DNA of 64,000 nt from Orbicella franksi (taxonomy: Eukaryota): assembly GCA_964199315.1 (NCBI GenBank), contig OZ116709.1, positions 23,808,001 through 23,872,000 of the forward strand, read 5' to 3'. Every line of letters starts with the position of its first letter. Positions within the stretch are counted from its first letter, which is position 1. The notes beneath the pieces were generated by a model. The model ran no database searches, had not been told where the DNA came from, and worked only from the letters and a program-made list of their open reading frames with translations. Below, in pieces: positions 48,881 to 52,639 of this stretch. Position numbers and translations under genes: made by a program.

Positions 48881-51800
48881 ATGGAGCATATATTTACTCT
48901 TCTCCTCTGCCTGGTCTTTTCTGCGAGCACAGCGAGTTCACGGAAATCTGAAATGTTCATCTCCCCGAAAGGTAACGACACGCGATCGTGTGGGGAACGA
49001 AATGATCCGTGTCAAACGTTAGAGTATGTTTATGAATTGCTTTTGCCTTCAGGGTTTAATTCGACGGTTTTGCGACTTGACAAAGGAGAGTACAATCTTC
49101 GTAAAAGTCTTACTTTTGAGAAAGTGAAACATTTCAGCATATTTGGAGGATACGGCGAATCTGCCTCGAATGTCGACGTCGAAATAACTTGCGAACCCAA
49201 TGGAAGCCTCGCCTTCTTCCTCAGTGAAAACATAACTCTTCAAGGTCTCAAACTGTTGAACTGCGGAGGATGGCAAGAGGCTGCTATTTCGTCTCCTCTT
49301 TCCAAATTCAAGACAGCCATTCATTTTGACTATTGCAGAAATATTTGGATGCGAAGCGTCCAGATATCAGGTTCGGTAGGTCACGCGGCAAATTTCTACG
49401 AAATCGGAGGCGTGTTAGAAGTGACGGACTGTATTTTTGAGAACAACACAGCAGGTTCGGACGCCTATCCTATTCAATCTACCCATAGGCCAGAAAAAGA
49501 ACAGAACGGGTTCCATTATATCACTTCCGGTGGAGGTATTTTCCTGAAATTAAACAACTTCACTCGGCATCGTCCAAGCTTCACGAATGTGACGTCAGCC
49601 GAGCATGACACTTATATCCATGGCAACCGTTACACCTTCACGAACTGCAGCTTTCTCAGAAACGAAGTTACCAGAGCGTCGGTTTCCCCGGACTATTTCC
49701 AAGAAAGGTTTGAGAATCCGTTCAGCGGCCAAGGAGGTGGTTTGGGAATATCCATGGTGGGTTATGCTAGCAATTCCTCAGTGCTCATTCAAAACTGTAC
49801 GTTTTTGGCAAACAAAGCACCGTGGGGAGGGGGCCTGATGGTCGAGTTTGCTGATGCGAGTAGCAGAAACGTCCTCCTGGTCGAAAACAGTGTATTTGAT
49901 GGTAACGTTGGACGCTCGGCTGGTGGAGGAGCTCGTGTAGGGAACATGCTAACACCAGGTGTCTCTGTTCCACTGAACAAAGTTCGTTTCGTGAACTCGG
50001 TGTTTCGAGATAACTGGGGCCAGTGGGGAGGGGGTGTCTCTGTCTATGGCACCTCTATTTTTTGCAAATGCAAACACAAGTTCAACAGCGAAAGTATTTT
50101 CTCTTTCCAATCGTGTCAGTGGAGGGGAAACAAGGGAACTGTTGGATCGGCCATAGCTGCGTTCCTGTTTAATCAAAATAGAGATCACATCGGCCCCGAA
50201 ATTTCGTTTCATGTCGATTTTAACCATAGTCAAGTGGAAAACAACCAAGTCGAAATTCATGAAAGAAATGTTCTCATCGGAGAAGGGGCGATCTACAGCG
50301 TGGATGTATCGATCACTTTTCGAGGAAACACAACCATCAGGAACAACAATTTTACCGCACTTGTCTTAGATGGTGGAACACTAGAACTTCACGGCAACGT
50401 TGAATTTGTTGGCAACAGAGGATTTCGAGGAGGAGCAGTGGCAATGTACGGAAATTCACGGATTATACTGATGAAGAAATCGAGACTCTTTTTCAAGCAG
50501 AACTCATGTTCAGATAAAGGGGGAGCTATGTTCATCCAGACCCCTGGGTCTCCGCAGATTAGCTATGGTGTATCTGGAGATAACCCAAATGCTTGCTTCT
50601 TTGGTTACGAGGATAGCTGGAGTAACTTCGATGACTGGGACACGCGAGTAATTTTTCAAGATAACCAAGCACTCGACAATTCCTCCGGACACTCTGTTTT
50701 TGTTACAAGTCTTAAAAAATGCCGTAAGCCTGGGGAGACACGACTAAACAACTCCGTATTGGACTGGAAGTTTATTGAATACATCCGCACGTCGGAGAAG
50801 TCGTCGCGACGTTTAAATCAAACTGATAAACGAGAAGTCGTCACGAATCCTGTGGATATCGTCTACAGGAGGGGTGACTGGAATGTCTCCCCAAGTGAAG
50901 TTTTTAACCCAGTTGTTCAGCTACGCGACGAGAAGAACAATCCTGTTCGTGGAATTATAGAAGTCTCAGTGATGAATTCTACGAAAGGAGAAGATTCTAC
51001 TTCTGTACATTTACAAACATCTTCGTCGCTCTTTGTAGCTGATGGAAACATCTCTCGCCTCAAACTGGGAGGCGACGTTGGAGGCGAATTCACAGTGGTT
51101 CTTCGGCATATCGGAAGACAAATTCTGCAGAGGAACATTCAAGTGACATCTTTGAAACGTTGTAATCCTGGATTCTATCTCAAGGATGGAAGTTGCGTGT
51201 GCCACGAGCAATCTGAGGGTGTCTCAAGATGCGACAAAAGTGGAAAGACCGTTTATCTTAAACGTGGTTTCTGGGCTGGAATGGTGGATGGGAACTTTAC
51301 TTCTTATCGTTGTCCACATGGCCTCTGCAACTGCCCTCAGGGTCATGCTTTGTTACTTGCTGAGGATGAATGTGTCTTTATCGTTGAAGAAATGTGTGCA
51401 GGTAACAGAGAGCCGGGGAGTATTTTGTGTGGGAAATGCCGGACGGGTTTCAGCGTGGTGTTTGGTCACCGTAGCTGCTTTGAGTGTGGAAAGTATGGCT
51501 ATCTTCTTATGATACCAATATACCTGGTCGTAATATTTGGAGTGATAAGTCTAGCAATGATTTTTGACGTTGACGCATTCACAGGGTGGCTGAATGGTTG
51601 TTTGTACTTCTACCAAGTGATGTGGCAAGTCGTCGGAGAACAATTCATGTTCAGAGACTATTTTATGTTCTTTATCCTCAATTTGGTCAATTTCCGCCTG
51701 TGGATTGGAACTCACTTTTGCTTTTCGTCTCATTTGGATTACGCAGATAAGCTTTTCATTCAGCTTTTAACGCCTGCTTTCGTTTTGTTTGCGGTTGTCG

Positions 51801-52639
51801 CTCTGGCCAAGTTAGTGGGCAAGTACCCAAATTGGTGCTTCAGTCGGCGAGTGAAGGCACCCTTCCGCGCCATCTGCACCATCATTGTCCTCTGTTACAC
51901 AGGCATCACTTCAGCATGCCTAGAGATTCTGCACCCTACAGTTATTGGTGACAAGACAGTGCTATACGTCAGTGGGCACACGGACTTCTTTAGAGGCAAG
52001 CATGCTGTCTATGGAAGTATTGCTGTCTTATTCCTTGTTTTCTTCGTGGTTCCATTTCCGTTGATTCTGATGTTCCGACCTTTCTTCACGCGGTGCCTTA
52101 AGCCAGTGTTAAACCTAAACCGCTTCAAACCAATCTTTGACGTGCTTCAGAGCTGCTTCAAGGACCAACATCGATGGTTTGCAGCTTTTTACTTCATTTG
52201 TCGCCTGGTCGTGCTGCTGATAGCCACGTATGTTCCATCTGGTCCCGTAAATCGGTCGCTTTTGGAGGTCACCTGCATTACGATCCTGTTAATCTTTTCC
52301 TACGTGAGACCCTACAAAAGATCTGAGGAAGGCAAAGATGGCGAGGCATGTAATTACGTCTTGGCGAACAGGTCAGACGCTCTCCTCTTATGGAACCTGT
52401 CCATCATGGCGGCCTTCAGTTCAGCCACTGAAAACGATGATATCCAGGAACGCCACAAAGCCGCCTTGAGGGTACTCATTCAAATCATGGCTTATGGCCC
52501 GTTTGCTGTAAAAGCCTGGGTTTTGTACAGGAAGACCAGAGTGCGTTGCGACAGTGGGTGGTGCAAAGACGACGAAGACCTAGACTTTCCTTCAGAAACG
52601 GTGGTGCACAAAGCAGGATCAGGAGCCTTGGATAGGTAA
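48881..52639 (+). CDS. Intronless 1252-aa orphan membrane protein: signal peptide, pectin-lyase-like beta-helix with Pmp-type GG[AG][ILV]/FxxN repeats, beta-sandwich linker, Cys-rich stalk, about 8-9 TM helices
   Basis: Uninterrupted 3759-nt ORF with ATG. Signal MEHIFTLLLCLVFSASTASS; cap motif FISPKGNDTRSCGERNDPCQTL; alternating FENN/FLRN/FLAN/FDGN/FRDN/FVGN/FKQN/FQDN and GGGI/GGGL/GGGA/GGGV/GGAV/GGAM motifs; Cys-rich block CNPGFY...CPHGLCNC...LCGKCRTGF...CFEC; hydrophobic helices in the last ~390 aa. Confidence 0.93.
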   Translation: MEHIFTLLLCLVFSASTASSRKSEMFISPKGNDTRSCGERNDPCQTLEYVYELLLPSGFNSTVLRLDKGEYNLRKSLTFEKVKHFSIFGGYGESASNVDVEITCEPNGSLAFFLSENITLQGLKLLNCGGWQEAAISSPLSKFKTAIHFDYCRNIWMRSVQISGSVGHAANFYEIGGVLEVTDCIFENNTAGSDAYPIQSTHRPEKEQNGFHYITSGGGIFLKLNNFTRHRPSFTNVTSAEHDTYIHGNRYTFTNCSFLRNEVTRASVSPDYFQERFENPFSGQGGGLGISMVGYASNSSVLIQNCTFLANKAPWGGGLMVEFADASSRNVLLVENSVFDGNVGRSAGGGARVGNMLTPGVSVPLNKVRFVNSVFRDNWGQWGGGVSVYGTSIFCKCKHKFNSESIFSFQSCQWRGNKGTVGSAIAAFLFNQNRDHIGPEISFHVDFNHSQVENNQVEIHERNVLIGEGAIYSVDVSITFRGNTTIRNNNFTALVLDGGTLELHGNVEFVGNRGFRGGAVAMYGNSRIILMKKSRLFFKQNSCSDKGGAMFIQTPGSPQISYGVSGDNPNACFFGYEDSWSNFDDWDTRVIFQDNQALDNSSGHSVFVTSLKKCRKPGETRLNNSVLDWKFIEYIRTSEKSSRRLNQTDKREVVTNPVDIVYRRGDWNVSPSEVFNPVVQLRDEKNNPVRGIIEVSVMNSTKGEDSTSVHLQTSSSLFVADGNISRLKLGGDVGGEFTVVLRHIGRQILQRNIQVTSLKRCNPGFYLKDGSCVCHEQSEGVSRCDKSGKTVYLKRGFWAGMVDGNFTSYRCPHGLCNCPQGHALLLAEDECVFIVEEMCAGNREPGSILCGKCRTGFSVVFGHRSCFECGKYGYLLMIPIYLVVIFGVISLAMIFDVDAFTGWLNGCLYFYQVMWQVVGEQFMFRDYFMFFILNLVNFRLWIGTHFCFSSHLDYADKLFIQLLTPAFVLFAVVALAKLVGKYPNWCFSRRVKAPFRAICTIIVLCYTGITSACLEILHPTVIGDKTVLYVSGHTDFFRGKHAVYGSIAVLFLVFFVVPFPLILMFRPFFTRCLKPVLNLNRFKPIFDVLQSCFKDQHRWFAAFYFICRLVVLLIATYVPSGPVNRSLLEVTCITILLIFSYVRPYKRSEEGKDGEACNYVLANRSDALLLWNLSIMAAFSSATENDDIQERHKAALRVLIQIMAYGPFAVKAWVLYRKTRVRCDSGWCKDDEDLDFPSETVVHKAGSGALDR

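Follow-up and report, generated by a model that had tools for sequence, protein, structure and literature searches.

The window studied here is a stretch of 64,000 nucleotides from the coral Orbicella franksi (GenBank assembly GCA_964199315.1, contig OZ116709.1, positions 23,808,001 to 23,872,000 of the forward strand). Its sole open reading frame (ORF) of more than 320 codons, window positions 48881–52639 on the plus strand, is that of a stony-coral gene that lacks introns and evolves under purifying selection, and the product is a 1252-residue glycoprotein of the secretory pathway. The protein is divided into an ectodomain, predicted to comprise a Pmp-type right-handed parallel β-helix and an Ig-like β-sandwich, a cysteine-rich stalk, a membrane module of nine helices and a short cytoplasmic tail. 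The stalk and the nine-helix cassette form a divergent branch of a eukaryotic superfamily that includes PF06011 (Flc1-3 and Pkd2), SadA, DDB_G0281931 and the apicomplexan cysteine repeat modular proteins (CRMPs). Across this superfamily the cassette is joined to many different ligand-binding heads. The fusion to a β-helix and the large expansion in animals are undescribed in the literature searched, and the membrane module is of a known, mechanistically unsolved kind.

A preliminary description of the sequence had called the protein an orphan and knew of no function among its relatives. Neither statement holds. A profile built from an alignment of the stalk and membrane region (A1, 82 sequences) was matched by 13,995 representative clusters at an E value (E) of at most 1e-3, and by 4,997 at E≤1e-30, in a library clustered at 50% identity; the cassette is thus that of a giant eukaryotic family. 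In addition, the CRMPs of Toxoplasma and Plasmodium, SadA, Pkd2 of S. pombe and yeast Flc1-3 have all been studied, and are mechanistically unclear.

The stalk and the nine-helix membrane module

The C-terminal part of the protein (residues 750–1252) was modelled with AlphaFold2 (AF2; model m4d0b91b6cbb9), giving a predicted local distance difference test score (pLDDT) of 85.1 and a predicted template-modelling score (pTM) of 0.84. The model consists of disulfide-rich β-hairpins followed by a helical bundle. The hairpins, at model residues 16–119, make up a stalk of the DUF7630 or ephrin-receptor-like type, which spans residues 756–870 (51146–51490; positions are those of the window, plus strand, unless stated otherwise). 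Here, 13 cysteines lie within residues 761–869. Seven cysteines are invariant in A1: Cys811, 816, 839, 850, 853 and 866 in the stalk and Cys947 in the loop between the second and third membrane helices. Four more are conserved in at least 90%. PF24633 (DUF7630) is matched in 4 of the 82 sequences and weakly in paralogs, and structural neighbours carry Ephrin_rec_like or DUF7630.

The membrane module spans residues 873–1216 (51497–52528) and is assigned nine transmembrane (TM) helices from AF2, the hydropathy of the family and the positive-inside rule; eight or nine had been predicted from the sequence. These are TM1 (residues 876–897), TM2 (approximately 900–918), TM3 (958–981), TM4 (997–1016), TM5 (1040–1066), TM6 (1099–1118), TM7 (1126–1142), TM8 (1163–1182) and TM9 (1196–1216). 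The predicted topology has the N-terminus outside and the C-terminus inside, with the K/R-rich loops past TM3, TM5, TM7 and TM9 on the cytosolic side. The TM5–TM6 loop, which is placed inside the cell because it is rich in K and R, contains the most conserved motif of the module (residues 1079–1098; 52115–52174). In this motif P1084, D1087, Q1090, C1092, K1094, D1095 and R1098 are each conserved in at least 85% of the 82 sequences. The polar segment singled out in the preliminary description, FDVLQSCFKDQHRWFAAFY at residues 1086–1104, is part of this strongest-conserved region; R1108, inside TM6, is also strongly conserved. AF2 places an amphipathic helix in the loop, at model residues 330–341. 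The module is followed by the cytoplasmic tail of 36 residues, which has an acidic DDEDLDF cluster and, together with the stop codon, occupies 52529–52639. As AF2 confidence is low there, the tail is probably disordered.

The module is predicted to pair with itself. For a homodimer of residues 861–1239, the interaction prediction score from aligned errors (ipSAE) was 0.46 over three runs, versus 0.00 for the best of three controls. When the dimer score was calibrated on eukaryotic proteins, 17 of 29 solved homodimers and none of 30 single chains attained this mark. The predicted interface is symmetric and consists of TM7, TM8 and the segment that follows (residues 1122–1196; 52244–52468), with at least 86% of contacts agreeing between runs and a partner pLDDT of 71. 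The complex prediction lends in-silico support to a putative dimer through TM7 and TM8. The membrane domains of CRMPa and CRMPb are likewise predicted to pair, although the CRMPs do so as heterodimers and the coral protein would be a homodimer (PMC9815656).

Placement of the module in the superfamily comes from structural and profile comparisons. Foldseek searches of clusters in the AlphaFold database returned matches with E from 6e-20 to 2e-10 and TM-scores of 0.5–0.73. They are named 'TRP C-terminal domain-containing', 'Right handed beta helix domain-containing' and ABC glycine-betaine binding-domain (SBP), and they also include 'Receptor ligand binding region' (ANF-receptor), Sushi, laminin-EGF and ephrin-receptor-like proteins and Plasmodium cysteine repeat modular protein 2. 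The sponge 'TRP C-terminal domain-containing' proteins reach E 2e-16 and a TM-score of 0.73. Among Atlas shapes, those matching the module at TM-scores of 0.64–0.81 were clusters with Chlam_PMP (0.81), with Ephrin_rec_like plus PF06011, and with DUF7630 plus leucine-rich repeats (LRRs). The corals and sponges that had been named as sources of similar proteins were confirmed by homolog and structure matches. For the protists that had also been named, support comes by way of UniProt accession numbers, which we take to place relatives in many protists.

Among Swiss-Prot models, a probability of 1.0 was obtained for Dictyostelium proteins (Q54T82, SadA, TmcB/C) and fungal proteins only. The best match is Q54T82, the LRR protein DDB_G0281931 (E 1.9e-10, TM-score 0.52), and the SadA model matches the cassette with E 9e-5. 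The fungal models with this probability are Flc1-3, YOR365C, Pkd2, Trp663, Trp1322 and Cryptococcus Flc1, with Foldseek E of 3e-4 to 1e-3 for Flc1-3, Pkd2 and Trp663/1322. No bilaterian counterpart of the module was found among the reviewed (Swiss-Prot) proteins searched.

A profile link to PF06011 is provided by L007, a paralog in the same genome. L007 passes PF06011 with 32.8 bits (cut-off 28.5), and the A1 profile aligns to it over 395 columns that extend from the stalk to TM8 (hhalign probability 98%, E 2.8e-13). These model and profile matches bear out the TRP-like or FLC-type resemblance that had been proposed for the membrane region. The Pfam match of L007 is marginal, and in the precomputed table no copy other than this one, from the same genome as the window, carries it. 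For this reason the coral protein is placed in a divergent branch of the PF06011/SadA/CRMP superfamily and not in PF06011 proper.

L007 (G000:C1:23566200-23573300; L007:2353-5280, minus strand) combines the stalk and nine-helix cassette seen in the window gene with an LRR head. It corresponds in corals to Dictyostelium DDB_G0281931 and is one of a large coral family with 129 matches. In Acropora and Montipora, proteins of this LRR type are named 'putative leucine-rich repeat-containing protein DDB_G0281931' by NCBI.

Solved structures gave no match to the module: the best Foldseek hit in the PDB had E 0.1 and a TM-score below 0.2, and the best Z of a wide VIA-align search, 7.9, is at the noise level for helical models. 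A profile of the membrane half matched PDB sequences marginally only (MscK, E 0.59). The module had been described as that of a protein other than a G-protein-coupled receptor (GPCR); a GPCR is indeed rejected: there are nine helices and not seven, and the best GPCR matches have E of 0.009–0.2 and TM-scores of 0.13–0.19. Consistent with this, neither the query nor the 82 members of A1 have a Pfam match to GPS/GAIN or 7tm, and the sequence contains no DRY or ERW motif. Adhesion and class B and C GPCRs do resemble the coral protein in having a large adhesive or ligand-binding head, a cysteine-rich stalk, a multi-pass module and intron-free, tandemly expanded genes. They differ in their seven-helix fold, their GAIN/GPS region (adhesion class) and their DRY motif, none of which the coral protein has. 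A true TRP channel, which is a six-helix tetramer with a voltage-sensor-like and pore-loop fold, is rejected on fold and helix count; the only TRP matches are to the TRPM2 chanzyme (E 0.4–0.6, TM-score 0.10).

The studied members of the superfamily share the module and differ in what it carries. SadA, DDB_G0281931 and TmcB/C are nine-helix surface proteins with cysteine-rich repeats beneath a variable head, an arrangement that the coral protein shares; their heads are LRR or EGF modules and not a β-helix. To our knowledge, SadA is known only as a substrate-adhesion protein. The fungal PF06011 members (S. cerevisiae Flc1-3 and YOR365C, S. pombe Pkd2, Trp663 and Trp1322, and Cryptococcus Flc1) resemble it in the nine-helix module and are linked to it transitively through L007, whereas the query and its 82 relatives fail the PF06011 model and global TM-scores are about 0.3. 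The fungal proteins have an ML-like lumenal domain and long cytosolic tails, and we know of no description of either a β-helix or a cysteine stalk in them.

The CRMPs have a core in which cysteine-rich EGF- or ephrin-receptor-like repeats stand directly ahead of nine membrane helices (PMC9815656). CRMPa, CRMPb and PfCRMP1-4 thus resemble the coral protein in their cysteine repeats, nine helices, N-out/C-in topology and large adhesive ectodomain (PMC9815656, PMC9670195). In Foldseek comparisons, P. falciparum CRMP2 matches with E 2.4e-10 and a TM-score of 0.53, and Q8IBR8 and Q7RCD9 with E of about 2e-10 and TM-scores of 0.53–0.56. The likeness is one of predicted structure, and the CRMPs differ in that their heads are Kringle, MAR, EGF or C-lectin domains with no β-helix and in that they are predicted heterodimers within a rhoptry-discharge complex. 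They have been proposed to act as the host-contact sensor for rhoptry discharge (PMC9670195, PMC9815656). In the literature searched, no paper was found on DUF7630, nor on coral or sponge proteins of the Pmp or PF06011 type.

The β-helical ectodomain

The N-terminal part of the protein had been proposed to fold as a right-handed β-helix, and the evidence agrees. The AF2 model of residues 21–760 (mb0606ccbb862; pLDDT 86.2, pTM 0.88) shows short strands stacked over a long stretch and, after them, a β-sandwich. The helix occupies approximately residues 21–620 (48941–50740). Where about ten pairs of FxxN and GG motifs had been noted, this region contains 11 FxxN and 13 overlapping GG[AGSVIL] matches, versus means of 3.8 and 3.0 in shuffled sequences. 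The observed counts were reached by 5 and 1 of 5000 shuffles, respectively. In five pairs the spacing from FxxN to GG is 8–9 residues, which is the register of the Pmp repeat.

Foldseek returned 30 matches in the PDB at E≤1e-3 and all 30 are right-handed parallel β-helices. By type they are carbohydrate-active enzymes, adhesins and tailspikes, among them GH136 lacto-N-biosidases, GH110, PL6 alginate lyases, rhamnogalacturonan lyase, RbmB, phage tailspikes and the PfbA adhesin. Among Atlas shapes, those closest to the ectodomain belong to 'adhesin-like' Chlam_PMP proteins of archaea and bacteria (TM-scores of 0.5–0.55), which likewise have Ig-like domains after the helix. At the sequence level, a profile of the ectodomain half matched PDB sequences marginally only (Sf6 tailspike, E 0.009). 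The Pfam matches that the preliminary description had suggested looking for are found in relatives and not in the query. The query has no match to PF02415 or PF13229 at E≤1 and falls under the gathering threshold, and it fails PF06011 as well. Paralogs L010–L012 pass PF02415 (21–32 bits versus a cut-off of 20.6), L011 also passes PF13229, and L007 passes PF06011 as described above. Of 91 homologs, 20 match PF02415 and 17 match PF13229.

Chlamydial Pmps and the archaeal and bacterial Chlam_PMP proteins are like the coral ectodomain in that FxxN/GGA-type repeats build a right-handed β-helix, which in the archaeal proteins is followed by Ig-like domains (PMC11166332, PMC10715098). The Pmps are autotransporters with a C-terminal β-barrel; in the coral protein the helix is fused instead to an α-helical, nine-pass eukaryotic module. 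No such barrel is present here, as the C-terminal 380 residues are the nine α-helices and there is no autotransporter Pfam match.

Conservation was read from an ectodomain alignment of 85 sequences (A2). The helix columns that are invariant or 90% conserved correspond to the F, N, G and A with a structural role in the Pmp repeat, and only a few charged residues reach 70–87%. This pattern favours binding, with catalysis improbable. A fast-evolving sensor head was also considered and rejected: the ratio of nonsynonymous to synonymous substitution rates (dN/dS, or omega) of the β-helix is 0.19–0.29, similar to that of the membrane part, with no sign of an arms race.

The helix is joined to the stalk by an Ig-like β-sandwich linker at approximately residues 632–755 (50774–51145; AF2 strands at model residues 612–735). 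The D-x-x-N-N motif that had drawn attention to a sandwich-like linker is DEKNN at residue 683, and it lies within this predicted β-sandwich. D683 is conserved in 93% and D683 and E684 range over 88–93%. In the profile search there is a weak match to an S-layer protein domain.

The gene, its relatives and its transcripts

The frame begins at the first ATG, and the start codon and signal-peptide-like N-terminus (residues 1–20) occupy 48881–48940. This N-terminus is hydrophobic, MEHIFTLLLCLVFSASTASS, in agreement with the signal peptide proposed earlier, and the position of the hydrophobic stretch is kept in orthologs. The protein has 23 N-x-S/T sequons, 20 of which fall before residue 810, that is, ahead of the membrane region. 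The window has about 40% G+C and no N, and the G+C content of the ORF is ordinary for a coding region within it. This, and the presence of the membrane cassette throughout eukaryotes, gave little reason to consider horizontal transfer of a bacterial Pmp gene. Direct sequence searches of the whole protein against Pfam, NCBIfam and PDB sequences gave no match. The homologs, 91 in all, range from 98% down to 21% identity. Those with names are from Stylophora, Montipora, Orbicella, Oculina and Desmophyllum, each labelled 'uncharacterized', and, more remotely, from the sponge Amphimedon. Orthologs are present at 66–98% identity, and the frame of 1252 codons is uninterrupted both in the window and in orthologs with as little as 61% identity.

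Three orthologous loci from other coral assemblies, L013, L014 and L015 (90%, 75% and 66% amino acid identity), were aligned codon by codon with the window gene. Nei-Gojobori dN/dS over the whole length is 0.27, 0.25 and 0.23, with dS up to 0.96, and per domain it ranges from 0.13 to 0.36. As these ratios are low both overall and in each domain, the plus-strand frame is under purifying selection throughout. L013 is syntenic with the window, with a CAP-domain gene downstream in both (L013:18361-18837, minus strand; window 55447–58960).

Nine homologs from other corals (P0018–P0025 and P0262; 928–1016 residues), which form a sister clade with 55–63% identity, all end directly past the conserved LYSYQV in TM2. 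Most simply, this common stop point is an intron that was read through by the ORF caller, an explanation for which natural single-pass forms were dropped. It suggests that the clade gained an intron at this point, unlike the intron-free window gene.

In the 497-Mb genome (G000) there are at least eight close, full-length, intron-free paralogs, counting the window gene itself: six on C9, one on C1 and the window gene on C12. Four multi-exon relatives on C14 and about 40 more distant loci come in addition. Many of the distant loci are open frames of 1250–1476 codons in tandem arrays on C3, C4 and C9. Intron-free arrays of the nine-helix cassette lie at G000:C9:14.27-14.36 Mb, C9:18.46-18.80 Mb, C3:13.16-13.90 Mb and C4:33.70-33.72 Mb. 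The heads of the paralogs that were fetched are a β-helix, LRRs or a region with no Pfam match, the last in L001, L004, L005 and L008. Receptor families are usually laid out in this way, as intron-free, tandem genes in which the heads vary and the membrane module stays constant, and the arrays resemble those of chemoreceptor genes.

RNA is present at the locus. About 90% of sampled words from it occur in 14 RNA runs from at least seven studies, and in four runs from four studies RNA contigs of 4.1–4.7 kb span the ORF from 48776 or 48817 to 52907–52920. In a polyA run the depth is zero over 48291–48684; therefore, the signal is RNA and not contaminating DNA. The contigs are unstranded, and the direction of transcription cannot be read from them. 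In one run a contig begins at 48776 without the splice described below; it would be the sense mRNA, and sense transcription of the ORF is likely.

The splice belongs to a transcript of the opposite strand. A contig joint, 48108>48817, with CT..AC ends defines a minus-strand intron at 48109–48816, outside the protein; the exon upstream of this intron overlaps the ORF at its 5' end. Read on the minus strand, the two sides of the joint are CAG/GTAAAT and TTTCTTTCAG/C, where the slash marks the boundary. The second exon of this transcript (48108–48041) is 68 nucleotides long and begins with ATG (MNTTENMNVSK...), and a further minus-strand donor, CAAG/GTAAGT, lies at 48041/48040. This transcript probably comes from a neighbouring gene arranged head to head, or else is a natural antisense RNA; most simply, it is the former, with a non-coding first exon that overlaps the 5' end of the ORF gene.

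At 52860–53357, 220 bp 3' of the stop codon, there is a dispersed repeat, about 497 bp long, that contains an inverted repeat. A genome search for it gave 1041 first-look candidates, and the 40 copies that were scored are 88–93% identical. RNA-contig depth rises 10- to 40-fold at this repeat. All transcript contigs stop at its edge, which is why the 3' end of the mRNA is not visible.

Proposed function and its alternatives

The reading that we favour, by a modest balance of the evidence, is that the protein may be a contact- or glycan-sensing receptor-adhesin that signals through its dimeric nine-helix module, and is neither an enzyme nor a GPCR. Here, dimers joined through TM7 and TM8 would be displayed on the cell surface, and the β-helix would attach to some polymer or surface outside the cell, with a glycan the likeliest ligand. 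This binding, or a pull on the rigid rod of helix, sandwich and stalk, would then be passed to the nine-helix module. Two outputs of the module can be envisaged. The first is Ca2+ permeation, as reported for reconstituted S. pombe Pkd2, which is Ca2+-permeable upon membrane stretch (PMC9727806). Within the superfamily, Ca2+ permeability or a role in Ca2+ homeostasis has been reported for fungal PF06011 members only (PMC9727806, PMC9600462). In the second, a cytosolic partner would be engaged through the invariant motif of the TM5–TM6 loop.

A bolder version is doubtful. It would make the protein an animal representative of a class of receptor-channels not yet recognised, dimeric and with nine helices of the CRMP/SadA/Pkd2 fold, in which a rigid, glycan-binding β-helix directly gates Ca2+ entry on contact with microbes, symbionts or substrate and which has expanded to dozens of intron-free genes in corals and sponges.

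Several observations weigh against a surface receptor-adhesin of the kind proposed. Global TM-scores to the fungal models are low (0.29–0.34), the query passes no Pfam model, none of the 82 A1 members matches PF06011 directly at the cut-off of 28.5 bits, and the fold of the module is unlike that of any solved channel in either the Foldseek or the VIA-align search. Channel activity in the superfamily itself rests mainly on one reconstitution study. Fungal Flc proteins have been reported in the endoplasmic reticulum (ER), so that an internal location is conceivable. In the ectodomain, eight charged residues (D33, R153, H242, H247, R352, D497, R516 and K546) are conserved at 70–87%, so that catalysis is conceivable. 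Finally, no strand can be read from the RNA contigs, and every splice junction among them has minus-strand polarity.

The alternative that survives best, while still rather unlikely, is a pure adhesion molecule like SadA. In such a protein the β-helix would attach the cell to another cell or to matrix, skeleton or substrate. The module would serve as an anchor only, perhaps with a link to the cytoskeleton, in the absence of ion flux or signalling. The match of the SadA model to the cassette fits this account, as do the nearest shapes of the ectodomain, which are Pmps, archaeal 'adhesin-like' proteins and the PfbA adhesin, and its plain purifying selection, which is expected for a fixed self or matrix ligand. 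However, the most conserved residues of the protein are in the membrane module and its cytosolic loop, which would be superfluous for a mere anchor, and the 36-residue tail has no recognisable cytoskeletal motif. In addition, the same cassette is paired in other eukaryotes with heads for small molecules (SBP, ANF-receptor), which fits sensing better than adhesion.

An intracellular, Flc-like protein of the ER, Golgi or a vesicle is an improbable alternative. Its β-helix would be lumenal and it would function in ion or cofactor homeostasis and not as a surface receptor. The structural and profile link to PF06011 and Flc1-3 is in keeping with such a role, and the signal peptide, sequons and disulfide-rich domains suit a lumen as well as the exterior. 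Against it, a rigid, adhesin-type ectodomain of 750 residues is typical of surface proteins, and so is the family-wide swapping of LRR, SBP, Sushi and β-helix heads. Furthermore, the N-terminus of CRMPa has been shown experimentally to be exposed outside the cell (PMC9670195).

Catalysis by the β-helix, with a membrane part that only positions a polysaccharide lyase or glycosidase, is more improbable still. The leading fold matches in the PDB speak for it (GH136 lacto-N-biosidases, GH110, PL6 alginate lyases, rhamnogalacturonan lyase, RbmB and depolymerising tailspikes), and a conserved loop holds H242 and H247 alongside several other conserved charged residues. Yet no acidic or basic residue is found among the helix columns conserved at 90% or more, all of which are structural. 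Identity to the enzymes is 7–12% with low global TM-scores, and the closest shapes are the non-enzymatic, adhesin-like Pmp proteins. Lastly, it is barely credible that the ORF is a non-working relic and its RNA an antisense or neighbouring minus-strand transcript only: the minus-strand splice junctions and unstranded contigs would allow it, but the frame is intact in orthologs, dN/dS is 0.23–0.27 (dS reaches 0.96), confidence in the AF2 models is high (pLDDT 85–86) and one run holds the unspliced contig from 48776.

The main interest of this gene is as an entry point to a very large and unsolved receptor-like family. With about 14,000 clusters at 50% identity, the stalk and nine-helix cassette is among the larger eukaryotic membrane-protein families in this analysis, and it is one without a solved structure or an agreed mechanism. 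Its studied members are found in separate literatures, on fungal 'TRP-like' Ca2+ proteins, a Dictyostelium adhesion receptor and an apicomplexan invasion sensor, which are linked by dozens of intron-free, conserved and transcribed coral and sponge members with adhesin-type heads. As the window gene is compact and intron-free and its domains are well predicted, it is a practical target for structural and functional work. The receptor-adhesin proposed here is a candidate surface-sensing system in early-branching animals, and it could bear on how corals recognise microbes, symbionts and substrate.

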